Shown here: one piece after another, positions 393-63,862 of the stretch | How the letters are laid out: every line of letters begins with the position of its first letter | Position numbering within the stretch: position 1 is the first letter of the stretch | Origin: Isurus oxyrinchus | Lineage: Eukaryota | NCBI GenBank assembly: GCA_026770705.1 | Contig: JANJGN010000071.1 | Location: 2,170,001-2,234,000, forward strand | Length of the DNA stretch: 64,000 nucleotides | Reading direction: 5' to 3' | Notes under the pieces: generated by a model | Told to the model about the DNA's origin: nothing | The model's database searches: none | The model's input: only the letters and a program-made list of their open reading frames with translations | Made by a program: the position numbers and the translations under genes

Positions 393-423
393 TATTATCC
401 TGTAACCCAGCTTCACGTTTCTG
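393..423 (+). pseudogene. Gene A: 3' remnant of a deleted Siglec-like V-set exon
   Basis: Pre-V intron sequence (ccagagttaaatattgacattt) is joined directly to the exon end tattatcctgtaacccagcttcacgtttctg|gtaagt (YYPVTQLHVS). The acceptor and about 340 nt seen in paralogs at 15969, 27969 and 63476 are missing. Confidence 0.9.
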
Positions 424-894
424 GTAAGTGCTGCGTTATAATTACTCAACAATTCACATCCAACACTCAATGGGAAATAACACTAACTGTGACGTTTACA
501 TATTAACACAAAACACAGCTTATTATAACACACTGTCTGATTCTCAATAACCTGGTGATCGCTTCCAGTTCAGTCCTAAAGCAACCTCTAATACTCACTT
601 TAATATCAATGATGAAAAGCATTAACTGTATTATCAGGTTATCCACTCCCATCAATCTCTCCTGTCCTGTTTAAAAGTCTGACGTATCGATAAAAGAAAG
701 ATGTGCATTTCTGCAGCACAATTTACCACCTCAGGAGGATCCAAATCCCTTCACAGCCAATGAAATTATTCCTGAATTGTAGTCACAGATGTTAAACACA
801 GCAGGCAGTTTGTGCACAGCAAGATCCAACAAACCACAAGGTGATAAATCACCCAGATCACTGAGGAAATGAGAAGCCAGTGAACTCAAACCTC

Positions 895-1032
895 TGGTCT
901 GATGAAGAGTCATACGGACTCGAAACGTTAACCCTGTCTTCCTCTCCACTGATACTGTCAGACCTGCTGAGTCTTTCCAGCAATTTTTGTTTTTGTTTCA
1001 GATTTCCAGCATCCGCAGTATTCTGCTTTTAA
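895..1032 (+). mobile_element. Penelope-like element remnant with a minimal hammerhead-ribozyme-like motif
   Basis: CTGATGA-A-GAGTC-atacg-GACTC-GAAA-CGTT at 899-929, followed by sequence shared with the elements at 12095-12310 and 31930-32135. Confidence 0.6.
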
Positions 1033-1282
1033 CTCCAATCTCTGGTCTGAGCCTCTTCTCTCATCCAGTGTTCTCAATTCACATGTCTCGGAGTGAACGT
1101 GTATTAAGCTGAGAGACAGAAACACTACTGCCAAAGAGCAAGAAAATCTTTCCTGATCATTGTAACCTCTCAGTTCTGATATCATCCTTGTAAAATTGCT
1201 TTCTCTTGTGGGACTGTGGTTTCTATTTGAACTGATGCTTCACGTTATATTTCTCTAAAAGGATCCATTCCCTGTCTGTTAG

Positions 1283-59479: not shown

Positions 59480-61555
59480 AGGACAGGGAACAAGAGGTTT
59501 CTGGTATCATTTTCAAATTTCTTGACAATTATACAAGTGTTTTGAATGCAAGGAGTCTGACAGACTTGCATTCTCCTGCAGGTGTAATGATGCAGCTCCC
59601 TTGAAACTGCCAATATTGTTGAAACTTTCTGCATATTTCAATGTTATGTCATGAACAGAGGTAATGGGGTAGTTTCTGAGACAGGGACAGACATAAATCC
59701 ATTGGCTTTCGGCCGGACCGGACAATCCTGGCAGTGGGTGGGGCCAGAAAATCCCACCCCTATGGGACATTTTCAGTTTATGCGATGTGCCCAGCGAGAT
59801 CAATAAAGACCACAATCCACAATTTATTGGCAAGCTACGTCAGGATATGTGTGAGAGGTGGAATATCGATCACTGCTCCTCGTCTCGCAATGCACATCAT
59901 CGCCATTTCCTGGTTTGTCAATCACCACATGTATATGTTCCTGATGGGATAGCGGATGGTCATTCTTATTGCTTGAAGGTTCCCCGTTGTGTAGGGTCTG
60001 TTTGGATCAGCGCATGGCTCTTTGTAGCTGCATCAGCCTTTGCTCTAGTGCCCTGCTGCTGTCAATGGCCCTTTCTGCCACAAGCCTTGCAGGATTGGTG
60101 GAAAGCTGGGCATTTCCTTGGTGCCTGCAGAAGGCCACACCTTCCACACGTCTCACTAGGTTTGGATGTTCTAGTGAGTGTGTCAACAATTGATGTTGTA
60201 CTGAGGACCTGTAAGCTTCGGTGACCTGCGAGGATCACTTCGTATTTATGTCCATCCTTGAGTAGCTCTTCAATGCTATAGGTTTTGGTCTTATCTAGCA
60301 GATCTTTCTGGAAGGCTTCCATGGGAGTGGATGCGATCACCAACTCAATAACTGTGTCTGCAGACTCTGTGTTTGAAATCACAGTGCGTATCCTTTTCTC
60401 TACATCGGCTGATGAAGTGGTCTATGGATTGTGTAGGCTGATGAAATGACATAAACTCTAGTTGATGAATATGGAGTTTAACCTGATTCTGAACCTGTCT
60501 TCCAATATCATCCATATCTATTGGGGATCCTTTCGCTCTTCTGCTGTTAATCCTGACGTGTTCAGCCTGTGTAGACCTTCATTCCCAATCGCGAGGTGAA
60601 TTTTTATGGGTGGCTCGTCTGGTTCAGTCACACCTGAATCAGGAAACCAGAGCTCTGTACGCTGTTTAAACATTCTGAATTCAGATAGTCGGTCAGCTAC
60701 ATCCCAGTTCAAACTGGGGAATTTCGTGGACATTCTGACAATATTCCTTTGACATTCCTTCTCCTACAGGATCTGGGATGAGTGTCGCTTTAGCCCCTTT
60801 CGTGTGCTTTTCCGAAGCACCGCCCACGGAGACGGGTTGTGGCAGGAACACACCACGGAGTAATGGAGTCTTTGTTTTTTATTCAATTTGCTGTTCAGCA
60901 ATCTCGAAGCCGCCCGTTATAATCACTAACTTCTCTGGGCTGATTTTTATAATGGTTTTTGTGTGTTTGAATCTCCCTCGCTCACTATCGATCCAGCCCA
61001 CACCCTGGTCACTCACCTTCCCTGACTGAGCTAACCCACTGCTGGTCCTGGCGATACACACTGTCCCACTCACTGACCTACAGGCCGTGTGCTGTAATCT
61101 CACCACGAGGGATCCGTCTGCTCCCCAGCTCTTTACTTGAGCTCTTTCCCGTCACTGTGTCTTAAAGGTTTCCTGAGCAGTCAGTACACTGCGATTTCAG
61201 CCCTCTCTGATGCTGTGTCTCTGTTGTGGTCTGACCAAAGCATCGAGGGTCGTCTCATGTCATGTAGCTCGATCTCAGGCTGATCACCACATCATACCTG
61301 TACTGAATCTTGCTGCCAGAATGTTTGGCCACCGCTGATCACCATGTTGTGTTTTTATAATGATATAAAGGCACCAGCCACTGATACGGAATTGGGTAAA
61401 CACATTGTGGGTTCAGTTATTTGGAACAAGGACATGAGAACAGATATACAAGGATAGAAAGCTGGGAGACACCTGCAGCCAAACTGTGTGAGCTGTGTTC
61501 TGCTCACAGGCCAAAGTGAAACTTGGACTGGATGGTGTTACCATCCCAGCTGATG
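59480..61555 (-). mobile_element. Degenerate Ty3/Gypsy LTR retrotransposon fragment
   Basis: gag zinc knuckles CGRCG..CPA...CKACGRKGH (60062-60382); LTR end at 61345 followed on the minus strand by a tRNA-Leu-like PBS tggtgatcagcggtgg. Confidence 0.8.
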
Positions 61556-63475
61556 TTACTACTGGGCAAGTCAGATCCCAGGGTGGAGCTCAGCTTGATA
61601 GGTCCTAACTTTTATTTTTTATTTAGGAATGTGGAGTGTGGCTACTGAACAGAGTCACAGGAGTCATCTGATGAACGTCTAACAAAAGAATAAAACATTT
61701 ATTAAACTAGGAAAGACAAACTATATTACATTACTCCTTCACCCAGACCTATACCTTTACAGATTCATAAGTAGAACATAAGTTACAATAGCTATCTTAT
61801 ACTCTCATGTTCACACTAAGTGCACAGTCGATGTAAACCAATAGACGACCTGGGGTCAGGGACACCACATTCTGAAAGAAACTGACAGAACCCACTTGGA
61901 ACAAATTCTATGTCTCCCTCCTCATCTGACCCCAGACGCTTGTTACACTGTGAGCCAACCAGTCTCACTGAACTGAGATATCCATATGAGGGTTTCCAAT
62001 CCCCACTCTCCAAGAACTCGCTTTGGAATCTCCTCCAACATGACACTTTCACTCAGACACCTTCCACAAGGGTCCACTTTCACTATTTCAAACTCTCCTT
62101 CCCATGTTCCTGTCCCCTGGATCGCCACGTGCATTCAGCCTTCCTTCCACGCCCTGTCTCTCCAATGCTCAGCCGTGTCAATGGAACACCATGGCTTCAC
62201 ATGGCCGTAGTAATGAGTCACCAACCTGTGGTGTCTCCTAGGATCTTCTGGCTTCTCACAAGCCTATTTTGCTTTAGGTCTGTGTCCTGCTGCTTTCTCC
62301 CTTTATGTTTCGAGCATTCTTCTGTTCCTCACTCTTAACTTCACTTAACAGGGCCTTTCCCAGATTTGACTAGAAGGTTTTCTTGGGCCCTTTCTCCTGT
62401 TCCACTCGATGGTTTTGGCTTCATCTTTACTTTGGGACTGACTATCTGTCCCGCTCCTTTGCTGCTTCTCCTGGCAACTCCTTTCAACAGAACTGAAAGT
62501 ACTTTTCTGTTTTTCTTTGTCTCTGTGTGTCCCTCCCTCTGGACCACTGTTACTCGGCAACAGCACAGTTTCTTCTACCTTGTGTTTGTTTTGACTTCCC
62601 TTCAAGAGTCATAAAAACTCATTAGATAGGCGGCTTCTTCCAAAGTGAAACCAAAACTCAAGTTCCCCCTTTTCAAAACACCCAAATACAGAAATACAAA
62701 CTAAACTTGAACTGAAAGATATACCTTATGCCTAACGCACTCAAATACACAGAGAACTTCCTTAAGCCAACCCCAGTTCCAAAAAATCACATGACACACT
62801 TCCCCTCGAGTGATGTCATGCTGCTGTCCCTGAAAGGCATATTACAGCAGTGTTATCACTTGGCAGGTGATGTGTGCCAGGCAGACCAAGTCCATGAGAG
62901 AAAGCTGGTCACACGATCATAAAGATTTTTGATTTTTTTTATTTATTATGAGATGTGTGCACTGAATTCAGAAGCAATATGTCCACAAAGACCTTTAGAG
63001 ATTTAAAACAATAAATTAAATATTTGCCATCAAAATAAAAGATTTCAAGCACATACATAAGACTACAATGACTGCTATAATAACTCCTAAAATTCCTAAT
63101 TAACCTGACTCCCAGTTACACTTCCTTTAAGGCAACAGACCAAAAATAGATGTTAGATTTAAAACAAACTCAGCAAGTTAACCCAATGCCCTGGACAATG
63201 GAATTCCAAATGGATTTTACCCAACTTCAGTTCTGTTGGATAGCAGGCTTGTGCACAAACAGGGTCCTGAGGACCATGAGCCAATGTAGAATGAACTTGT
63301 CCACTCCTGTGTCCAGGATTCTCTCCCATCCATTGTGAAACCTTGGGGAGTTCCATGTGTGTCCTGTAGATGGTCCACACTGCAGCCACTGTTCCCAAGT
63401 GATGGAGGGGGCGGATATCAAGTCTAGTGGATCTACAAACCATCCAGAGTTAAATATTGATATTTCTCTCTCCAG

Positions 63476-63862
63476 TTGGACTGTCACAAGAGTGGAAAGG
63501 TGACACTCCACGAGAGGTGACAGCGCAGGAAGGTTCGTGTGTACAGATTCCATGTCATTACAGTTATCCAGCACTTCTAGTAGGGAGAGCACGTGTTGGA
63601 ATCTGGTATGTGAAATGGTACACATGGAATACATGGAATACAAGGTCTAGAGGGACCATAGCATTTCACTCCAAGGATCACAGTCACGAGTTACCACGGT
63701 TCCACCATCGGACCCGGCTGTCTGGAGACCTGAAAGATGGCGGCTGTTCCCTGATTATAAACAACATCAGACGGGAAGATGAAGGATATTATTATTTCAG
63801 AATAGAATTTGACAATGGTCCGAGCCATAACTATTACCCTGTAACCCAGCTTCAGGTTTCTG
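63476..63862 (+). CDS. Gene E exon: Siglec-type V-set domain (gene continues beyond the window)
   Basis: ctctccag|tt...tctg|gtaagt; 387 nt open; GSCVQIPC..GCSL..YYFRIE. Confidence 0.92.

Follow-up and report, generated by a model that had tools for sequence, protein, structure and literature searches.

The 64,000-nucleotide stretch analysed here (positions 2,170,001 to 2,234,000 of contig JANJGN010000071.1 of Isurus oxyrinchus; hereafter the window) is probably a piece of a large, fast-turning-over shark cluster of Siglec-type receptor genes, comprising one apparently intact inhibitory gene and two decayed units. A preliminary description of the stretch had proposed a paired activating/inhibitory Siglec-like cluster in which one nearly identical ectodomain kit is followed by three different signalling ends. 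As judged from the predicted genes, it is the family that shows the paired on/off design; the window itself contains no working pair.

The map was based on tandem-array masking, self-comparison, open frames, tblastn with the window's own exons and alignment of the copies. All protein searches were run exon by exon. Self-comparison of the masked window revealed repeated gene units on the + strand, and alignment of the copies placed their exons on that strand with AG/GT borders. The units were designated A, B (followed by a fragment, B2), C/D and E. Only gene C/D has a complete open ectodomain kit, consisting of a leader, an immunoglobulin (Ig) V exon and two Ig C2 exons (C2a and C2b), and it is apparently intact. 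Its predicted features, including a transmembrane (TM) exon and four tail cassettes with the inhibitory (ITIM) or switch (ITSM) form of the immunoreceptor tyrosine-based motif, are as follows.

26530-26614, + strand: 85-nt 5′ exon
27064-27103, + strand: coding part of the leader, from the alignment of leaders
27969-28337, + strand: V exon, open, with the YFFR arginine and Siglec-type cysteines
29649-29945, + strand: C2a exon, with the C-x5-C motif
32883-33164, + strand: C2b exon, 282 nt
33173-33507: sequence gap, assigned to an intron because it starts 8 nt past the C2b donor and stops 96 nt before the TM exon
33604-33700, + strand: Glu-containing TM exon of phase 1-2; 94% identity with model P0063 of the great white shark
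34423-34504 (phase 2-0) and 35904-36152, + strand: tail cassette 1, with YANP and TEYAQI, stop at 36150-36152 and an internal donor after 36136
37323-37404 and 38935-39183, + strand: tail cassette 2
40368-40449 and 41983-42231, + strand: tail cassette 3
43406-43487 and 45021-45269, + strand: tail cassette 4, with LFYANI (ITIM form) and TEYTQI (ITSM form)

All three V exons of the window (in units B, C/D and E) passed the Pfam cut-offs for V-set and Ig_CD22, C2a matched C2-set_2, and C2b matched Ig_3, I-set and Ig_2, with E values of 1e-8 to 1e-12 across the domains; the predicted exon assignments are far beyond chance. When V was compared with all solved structures, the 18 best matches were Siglecs (E 1.7e-13 to 4.5e-7), including Siglec-5 (1.7e-13), MAG (1.6e-12), Siglec-7/8 (3e-12), CD33 (1e-11), Siglec-10, sialoadhesin and Siglec-15. 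The first non-Siglec structure was pIgR (1.2e-5), and the match to PILR in this search was weak (1.4e-3). The conserved arginine of strand F, which in Siglecs binds the carboxylate of sialic acid, aligned on the YFFR of Siglec-5 (it stands in YFFR in units B and C/D and in YYFR in unit E), and it is present in all three V exons, pseudogene included. Siglecs are further marked by an intrasheet B-E cysteine pair in V and by one more V cysteine that pairs with an additional Cys of the first C2 domain. The special V cysteines, contained in the motifs CxxxPC and DCSL, aligned with their Siglec-5 counterparts, and the C-x5-C motif of C2a aligned with domain 2 of MAG. Every sequence-testable feature of Siglec family membership was found in these predicted domains. 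With these hallmarks, and with proteins of the great white shark and basking shark as the nearest public relatives, the earlier assignment to Siglec-type genes of a cartilaginous fish was borne out. The combination of a proximal ITIM and a distal ITIM-like motif or ITSM, a trait of CD33-related Siglecs, is present in the cassette 4 tail of gene C/D. Between a CD33-related grouping and the independent expansion suggested in the preliminary description, the solved-structure matches do not discriminate, V resembling Siglec-5 and MAG to about the same degree.

The V, C2a and C2b exons are of phase 1-1, with lengths of 366/369/387, 297 and 282 nt, respectively, the exception being C2b of unit A (281 nt, donor in phase 0). 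Apart from that exon, the exon borders and phases support the modular, phase-compatible kit of the preliminary description. Its wording that the ectodomain exons are nearly identical between units fits C2a (97-98% nucleotide and 94-96% amino acid identity), but not V (84-90% and 78-84%) or C2b (93% and 87%). The ratio of nonsynonymous to synonymous divergence (dN/dS) between V copies was 0.6-0.9, and their C-C′ region is strongly divergent. Between units B and C/D, dS was 0.04 in C2a and 0.15 in V, both from small counts, and identity along the units varied from 90 to 97% in the self-comparison; no long identical tract was found between the copies in the window. This patchy identity fits gene conversion or mosaic recombination weakly.

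Each 3-kb repeat at the 3′ side of gene C/D consists of an 82-nt exon (phase 2-0) and a tail exon, and within the tail exon, 16 nt ahead of the stop, there is an internal phase 2 donor (CAGATCAG/GT). Each of the four cassettes is exactly 315 nt (82 + 233), or 105 codons, so that serial splicing keeps the frame, and the great white shark models P0063 and P0034 splice two cassettes in series. Given the cassette length, the internal donor and the two-cassette models, serial use of the cassettes appears at least as likely as alternative use. A reading as four alternative tails only was set aside on account of the internal donors and the great white shark models with serial cassettes. Cassettes 1-3 carry TEYAQI, an ITSM form, plus YANP, which is not an ITIM. 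The TM exons are of phase 1-2 and the tail exon does not come directly behind them: an intervening exon of 82 nt (gene C/D) or 85 nt (unit A) restores phase 0, the true TM donor being AA/GTAAGT (phase 2). A phase 0 donor in the TM exon (TGT/GTGAGA) was rejected, as RefSeq relatives show the intervening exon. The Glu singled out in the TM of gene C/D is present, but as a Gly-to-Glu variant: most relatives have Gly and P0063 has Glu, and the residue was therefore given no weight as a functional feature. A Pfam scan of the tail exon gave no match, and an ESM Atlas search with it returned only unnamed clusters, under 0.9.

The opposite kind of end is a terminal exon with an arginine in the TM segment (Arg-TM exon), located behind unit B and fragment B2. 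The features of this region are listed below, where RNA-like contigs refers to the read contigs described further on, LINE to long interspersed nuclear element and UTR to untranslated region.

13665-13749, + strand: 85-nt 5′ exon of unit B
14841-14872, + strand: leader of unit B, broken, from the alignment of four leaders
15969-16334, + strand: V exon of unit B, with an in-frame TGA at 16004-16006 (CGA in other copies)
16867-16987, + strand: C2a fragment, first ~120 nt only, skipped in RNA-like contigs
17708-18004, + strand: C2a exon of unit B, open, borders used in RNA-like contigs
19014-19098, + strand: 85-nt 5′ exon of fragment B2, both ends spliced in RNA-like contigs (19014-19084; 19098 to ~19516)
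19552-19591, + strand: leader of fragment B2, coding part intact, donor after 19591 used in RNA-like contigs
20453-20463, + strand: start of the V exon of fragment B2, which ends 11 nt past the acceptor
21973-22112, + strand: Arg-TM terminal exon, starting in phase 1, with its own stop at 22110-22112
22318-22962, − strand: LINE-like fragment, an open frame like the window's other LINE frames, no Pfam match
23042-23210, + strand: remnant of an inhibitory-type tail exon 3′ UTR, ~80% identical to the DNA just after the cassette 4 stop

Of the 45 residues encoded by the Arg-TM exon, the 15th is Arg and 12 make up a Tyr-free tail; a Pfam scan with this exon gave no match. It has the form of the basic-TM partner of a paired receptor, and gene C/D, with all exons open and an unread gap in one intron, that of the ITIM partner. 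Together with the neutral TM and YxN tail of unit A (see below), all three signalling ends named in the preliminary description exist in the window. Unit B is predicted to be disabled by a leader frameshift (an 8-bp deletion directly after the ATG), a lost leader donor (GT to CT) and the TGA in V, downstream of which V still passes Pfam V-set; no C2b exon was found after its C2a in the window alignment. An excess of private changes was discarded as a sign of decay, as the C2a counts (B 5, C/D 4, A 2) gave no signal. In fragment B2, a single unit of a 33-bp minisatellite replaces the V exon at the breakpoint, and there is no ectodomain exon despite the intact leader. Owing to the lesions of unit B and the beheaded B2, the Arg-TM exon has no intact ectodomain in front of it in this assembly. 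The LINE-like fragment behind it occupies the expected position of the tail exon.

Read contigs from runs X1, X4 and X5 (two samples, two studies) and from the large DNA-like X18 were compared with positions 16200-22199; X1, X4 and X5 are three of five small 'organism A' runs that contain about half the words of 21940-22320. GT..AG joints at 16334/17708 (V-C2a) and 18004/21973 (C2a-Arg-TM) were found in X1, X4 and X5 and were not seen in the DNA-like X18. These intron-skipping joints make it likely that the runs are RNA. The contigs thus demonstrate splicing, at exactly the predicted borders, between a C2a of the family and an Arg-TM exon that does not differ from the window's. One X5 contig (850 nt) had 0 of 164 differences in the Arg-TM exon and 5 of 296 in C2a, and across contigs the Arg-TM exon plus its 3′ flank showed 0-1 differences over 164-204 letters. 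The five C2a differences from unit B were identical in X1, X4 and X5, and 6-8 of 134 letters differed from unit B V. At all five C2a sites, among them 17759, 17782 and 17843, and at V sites 16244, 16277 and 16294, the contigs replace a letter private to unit B with the letter of the other copies, and the contigs may therefore come from a source other than unit B. Behind 19591, a loose contig end has the same letters as a V exon at its beginning, and the leader donor there is thereby confirmed. A contig of run X5 joins a leader (19589) directly to C2a (17706) in a V-less in-frame transcript; the phase 1-1 exons make such a loss of V possible, and the same leader-C2a junction occurs in great white shark RefSeq models P0125/P0126. 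A possible donor, CTG/GTCAGT, lies at 22134-22140, 22 nt past the Arg-TM stop; contigs of X4 and X5 leave the window sequence at 22134/22135, and other contigs read through. No contig joining the Arg-TM exon to a tail was seen in X1, X4, X5 or X18.

Public proteins were examined by a full HMMER scan with the Arg-TM exon and by further searches. The scan returned ten proteins, with the exon always C-terminal, from catsharks, bamboo sharks, epaulette shark, whale shark and houndshark. Their RefSeq names are CD33-like, Siglec-11/12/13, CD22-like, sialoadhesin-like and SLAM family member 9-like, and their ectodomains are V-C2a, V-V-C2b-C2b, Ig_2/Ig_3 repeats, V alone or a single Ig_3. Conservation of the Arg-TM exon was 74-84% in other shark orders (84% to a catshark model). 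From these sequences, it appears to be a module common to several receptor families. In P0004, P0005, P0006, P0007 and P0009 (CD22-like, V-only and SLAM-like), the module is 65-80% identical and C-terminal.

Models of V-C2a-Arg-TM structure were found in great white shark (P0084, P0085 and P0088, with an Arg-TM differing from the window's by two to five residues) and catsharks (P0001, P0087 and P0089), so that the proposed joining of Ig exons to this exon was seen both in the RNA-like contigs and in RefSeq models of several sharks. Inhibitory models with serial cassettes (P0063, P0034) and models of the YxN type (P0057/P0058) were also present. Dozens of Siglec-named models exist in sharks, skates and rays, and all three gene types are already predicted by automatic annotation in many elasmobranchs. 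Identity of the window exons to models of the great white shark and basking shark is 84-96%. For V of gene C/D, the inhibitory gene, the highest identity (96%) is with V of the Arg-TM model P0084. Within the window, two intact genes with near-identical V were not found, the V domains of units B and C/D being 84% identical in amino acids. The proposed paired cluster thus stands at the family level, on the 96% match of V to an Arg-TM model and on the V-C2a-Arg-TM RefSeq models, and is not supported in the window itself, where units A and B are disabled. A V tree of 39 rows from four species plus the window, made by a quick method from rows picked by similarity search, with ends classed by simple motifs and with few supported branches, showed the signalling end scattered over the tree (19 changes, against a shuffled mean of 19.3). 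Literature searches found no paper on Siglec pairs in sharks, and on ITAM (immunoreceptor tyrosine-based activation motif) adaptors in cartilaginous fish they returned nothing usable. On Siglecs in sharks or cartilaginous fish the sole result was a brief reference in the whale shark genome paper, where Siglecs appear in a list of immune families that jawed vertebrates gained (PMC8455134).

The neutral TM with YxN tail belongs to unit A, which is cut by the start of the window.

1-391, + strand: intron before V, 96% match to 20052-20442
393-423, + strand: V remnant, the last ~25 nt of the V exon plus donor; 393-509 matches 16304-16419
1283-1579, + strand: C2a exon, 297 nt, phase 1-1, open; Pfam C2-set_2, E 2.2e-9
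7222-7502, + strand: C2b exon, 281 nt, with a 1-bp deletion relative to gene C/D; Pfam Ig_3, E 3.3e-12
8769-8865, + strand: uncharged TM exon of phase 1-2; 94% identity with the TM of basking shark P0057/P0058
9624-9708, + strand: cytoplasmic exon of 85 nt, phase 2-0, an element that is a 5′ exon elsewhere
10220-10324, + strand: cytoplasmic exon with VYEN, phase 0-0, 89% identical to P0057
10862-10978, + strand: last coding exon, containing LYAN and closing with SVYGNL and the stop

Alignment of five copies revealed that the V exon of unit A is deleted in DNA; the leader position would lie before the window start. The 1-bp deletion in C2b leaves its donor in phase 0 and thereby puts the TM exon out of frame, and unit A is predicted to be disabled by the V deletion together with this frameshift. 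The tail contains three YxN motifs, the C-terminal one in SVYGNL, and the order of TM, 85-nt exon and two tail exons is that of basking shark P0057/P0058. The TM exons of unit A and gene C/D are homologous (75% nucleotide identity). The whole ectodomain kit is confined to gene C/D; unit A is without V and unit B without C2b.

We propose that each gene of the cluster would be built, in order, from an 85-nt 5′ exon, leader, V, C2a, C2b and an end, which is either a phase 1-2 TM exon with cytoplasmic exons or the self-contained Arg-TM exon (phase 1, own stop). By analogy with known receptors, the V domain would bind sialylated ligands through its conserved Arg, the phosphorylated ITIM/ITSM tyrosines would recruit the Src homology 2 (SH2) phosphatases SHP-1/2, and the buried Arg of intact sister genes would dock an ITAM adaptor that bears an Asp and resembles DAP12 or FcR-gamma. 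In paired Ig-like receptors, an ITIM tail is opposed to a basic TM docking FcR-gamma or DAP12, and PIR-A or Fc-alpha-RI pair with FcR-gamma (PMC2213385, PMC4016189); Siglec-14/15/16 pair with DAP10/12 (summarised in PMC7226832). Unequal crossing-over and birth-and-death in introns rich in LINEs and minisatellites would swap the ends and leave wrecks such as units A and B. Turnover traces in the window are a retroelement-like stretch in the leader-V intron of unit E and the LINE-like piece at the site of the lost tail exon. An extension of this proposal, which we regard as tentative and somewhat less than an even prospect, is that the portable Arg-TM exon is a universal 'activating plug' that exon shuffling, in introns rich in minisatellites and LINEs, has placed behind ectodomains of Siglec-like, CD22-like, V-only and SLAM-like type. 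End swapping would then produce the paired on/off Siglec design repeatedly, and the beheaded unit, the lost tail exon and the V-less copy would be intermediate wreckage.

Several points weigh against the proposed cluster of one intact gene and two decayed units. Continuity of gene C/D across the gap at 33173-33507 is assumed; it is plausible in that C2b ends and the TM exon starts in phase 1, both on the + strand, and relatives P0054 and P0057 join such exons directly, yet a further exon could lie inside the gap, some relatives having several C2b domains. The lesions were read from a single assembly, and the read comparison covered 16200-22199, with the TGA and the unit B leader outside that range. 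The runs are labelled RNA only by a guess, in favour of which the intron-skipping joints speak, and the source of the contigs could be a sister copy, a different haplotype or a related species. The RefSeq models are predictions and may include mis-joins of neighbours. Ligand binding, phosphatase recruitment and adaptor pairing are inferred from the named receptor families.

Among other explanations, the one nearest to the preliminary description is a working trio, in which one ectodomain is used in the window on a neutral-TM/YxN end, an Arg-TM end and an inhibitory tail. All three ends are open with good splice sites, and each has close lamniform RefSeq counterparts. This seems very unlikely given that unit A is without V and frameshifted in C2b, unit B has three lesions and no C2b, B2 is without an ectodomain, and the complete open kit is confined to gene C/D. 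Alternatively, unit B and the Arg-TM exon might form a working gene in other haplotypes, with the reference representing a null allele or assembly errors and the contigs coming from this very locus. Null alleles are common among mammalian paired receptors, the contig Arg-TM exon and 3′ flank have 0-1 differences from the window, and the joints fall exactly on the unit B borders. In contrast, the contigs depart from unit B at all five private C2a sites and several V sites, always towards the consensus; the implied allelic divergence of 2-5% is high; and the three lesions are separate and differ in kind, one being an indel, one an altered splice site and one a nonsense codon. We consider this explanation unlikely.

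The Arg-TM exon could also be an alternative terminal exon of one gene with two ends, chosen against an ITIM tail by splicing or polyadenylation so that one ectodomain would switch sign, as the remnant of an inhibitory-type 3′ UTR 0.9 kb behind it and the possible donor 22 nt past its stop, where two contigs diverge, might suggest. However, the tail exon is gone from the locus, with a LINE-like piece in its stead, the Arg-TM exon has its own stop, RefSeq models end in it, and no contig was seen that joins it to a tail; an arrangement of this kind is highly improbable here. Finally, the genes might represent a shark-specific Ig superfamily with a Siglec-like fold and ligands other than sialic acid. 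Some mammalian Siglecs have lost the Arg or sialic-acid binding, and the dN/dS of V (0.6-0.9) and the strong differences between copies in the C-C′ region would suit such a family. The YFFR/YYFR arginine in all three V exons, even in the pseudogene, and the retention of both special cysteines and the partner C-x5-C motif argue against it and make it quite unlikely. Taken together, the observations favour a fast-turning-over Siglec-type cluster, sampled here through one apparently intact inhibitory gene and two decayed units.

Outside these units, the window contains six runs of N and many tandem arrays, among which a 33-bp minisatellite is dominant. Besides the gap in gene C/D, the remaining sequence features are as follows.

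48872-55922: five other gaps, in repeat-rich DNA between gene C/D and unit E, touching no claimed exon
1791-3377, 6433-7090, 18216-18718, 20464-20490, 23525-26259 and 32400-32750: 33-bp minisatellite
35557-35758 and in the other cassettes, 54811-55531 and 57423-57817: 33-bp minisatellite, continued
9624-9708, 13665-13749, 19014-19098 and 26530-26614, + strand: copies of the 85-nt exon-like element
58470-58509, + strand: coding part of the unit E leader, from the alignment of leaders
63476-63862, + strand: V exon of unit E, open; its C-C′ region is longer and the Arg is retained

The introns adjoining C2a and C2b are full of the 33-bp minisatellite, which also occurs, on the opposite strand, inside every tail cassette; it may mark the rearrangements or favour them. 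LINE reverse-transcriptase fragments are located in introns of the cluster, and a Pfam scan of several repeat-derived frames gave no match. The copies of the 85-nt element are 95-97% identical within a ~295-bp block; the element is the 5′ exon in units B, B2 and C/D and a cytoplasmic exon in unit A. A 42/43-bp tandem repeat at 12317-13515 and 57900-58172 has a unit resembling the core of this element, and in unit E the repeat (57900-58172) occupies the place expected for the element. Unit E is truncated by the window end. Its 5-kb leader-V intron contains long open frames on the − strand (59516-61151) with a zinc-knuckle-like CxxC...H...C pattern, which probably are a retroelement remnant; one of these frames was tested in Pfam and gave no match. 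At 27033-27103 and the equivalent leader sites, an upstream ATG opens a second, overlapping frame (MKYLGVDNDRE...), which is the start of some RefSeq models, great white and CD22-like (P0092, P0095, P0004); either an upstream open frame or an artefact of gene prediction might account for it.

Paired Siglecs have been described from mammals. Teleost genomes were reported to be without CD33-related Siglecs (PMC7226832). If the family is as proposed, a large modular set of paired Siglec-type genes in cartilaginous fish would mean either that the on/off design is much older than thought or that it is easily reinvented when exons are phase-compatible, and sharks would offer a natural setting in which to study the origin of activating twins from inhibitory receptors. 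The window is one further, partly decayed member of this set, with only the inhibitory gene intact; its own value lies in a record of turnover, with two differently broken units, a minisatellite breakpoint and an in-frame tail of four cassettes.

The closest known systems are the Siglec-named shark and ray RefSeq models (Siglec-12/13/14, CD33-like, MAG-like), which have identical exon types, order and junctions; P0084, P0085, P0088, P0063, P0034, P0057 and P0087 are 84-96% identical to window exons. These are intact predicted genes of other assemblies, and none is identical to any unit of the window. Human Siglec-5/14 and Siglec-11/16 resemble the shark genes in placing a conserved-Arg V-set on genes with opposite ends, one with an ITIM plus distal ITIM-like tail and the other with a basic-residue TM and a short tail, and human Siglec-5 is the best structure match of the window V. 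Unlike in the human pairs, the Arg-TM partner in the window is disabled, the shark Arg-TM is a separate self-contained exon found also on CD22-like, V-only and SLAM-like proteins, and the inhibitory tail consists of repeated 105-codon cassettes. Human CD33 (Siglec-3) has a V-C2 architecture, a proximal ITIM with a distal TxYxx(I/V) motif, and a V-less isoform. The short V-C2 form, the pair of tail motifs and the possibility of in-frame V loss are shared with the shark genes, whereas the missing V exon of unit A reflects a deletion in the DNA, not exon skipping. The KIR, LILR, PIR-A/B and PILR families are likewise tandem clusters with birth-and-death and many pseudogenes, but the ectodomain in the window is built on a lectin-type V-set, not on C2/I-set repeats.

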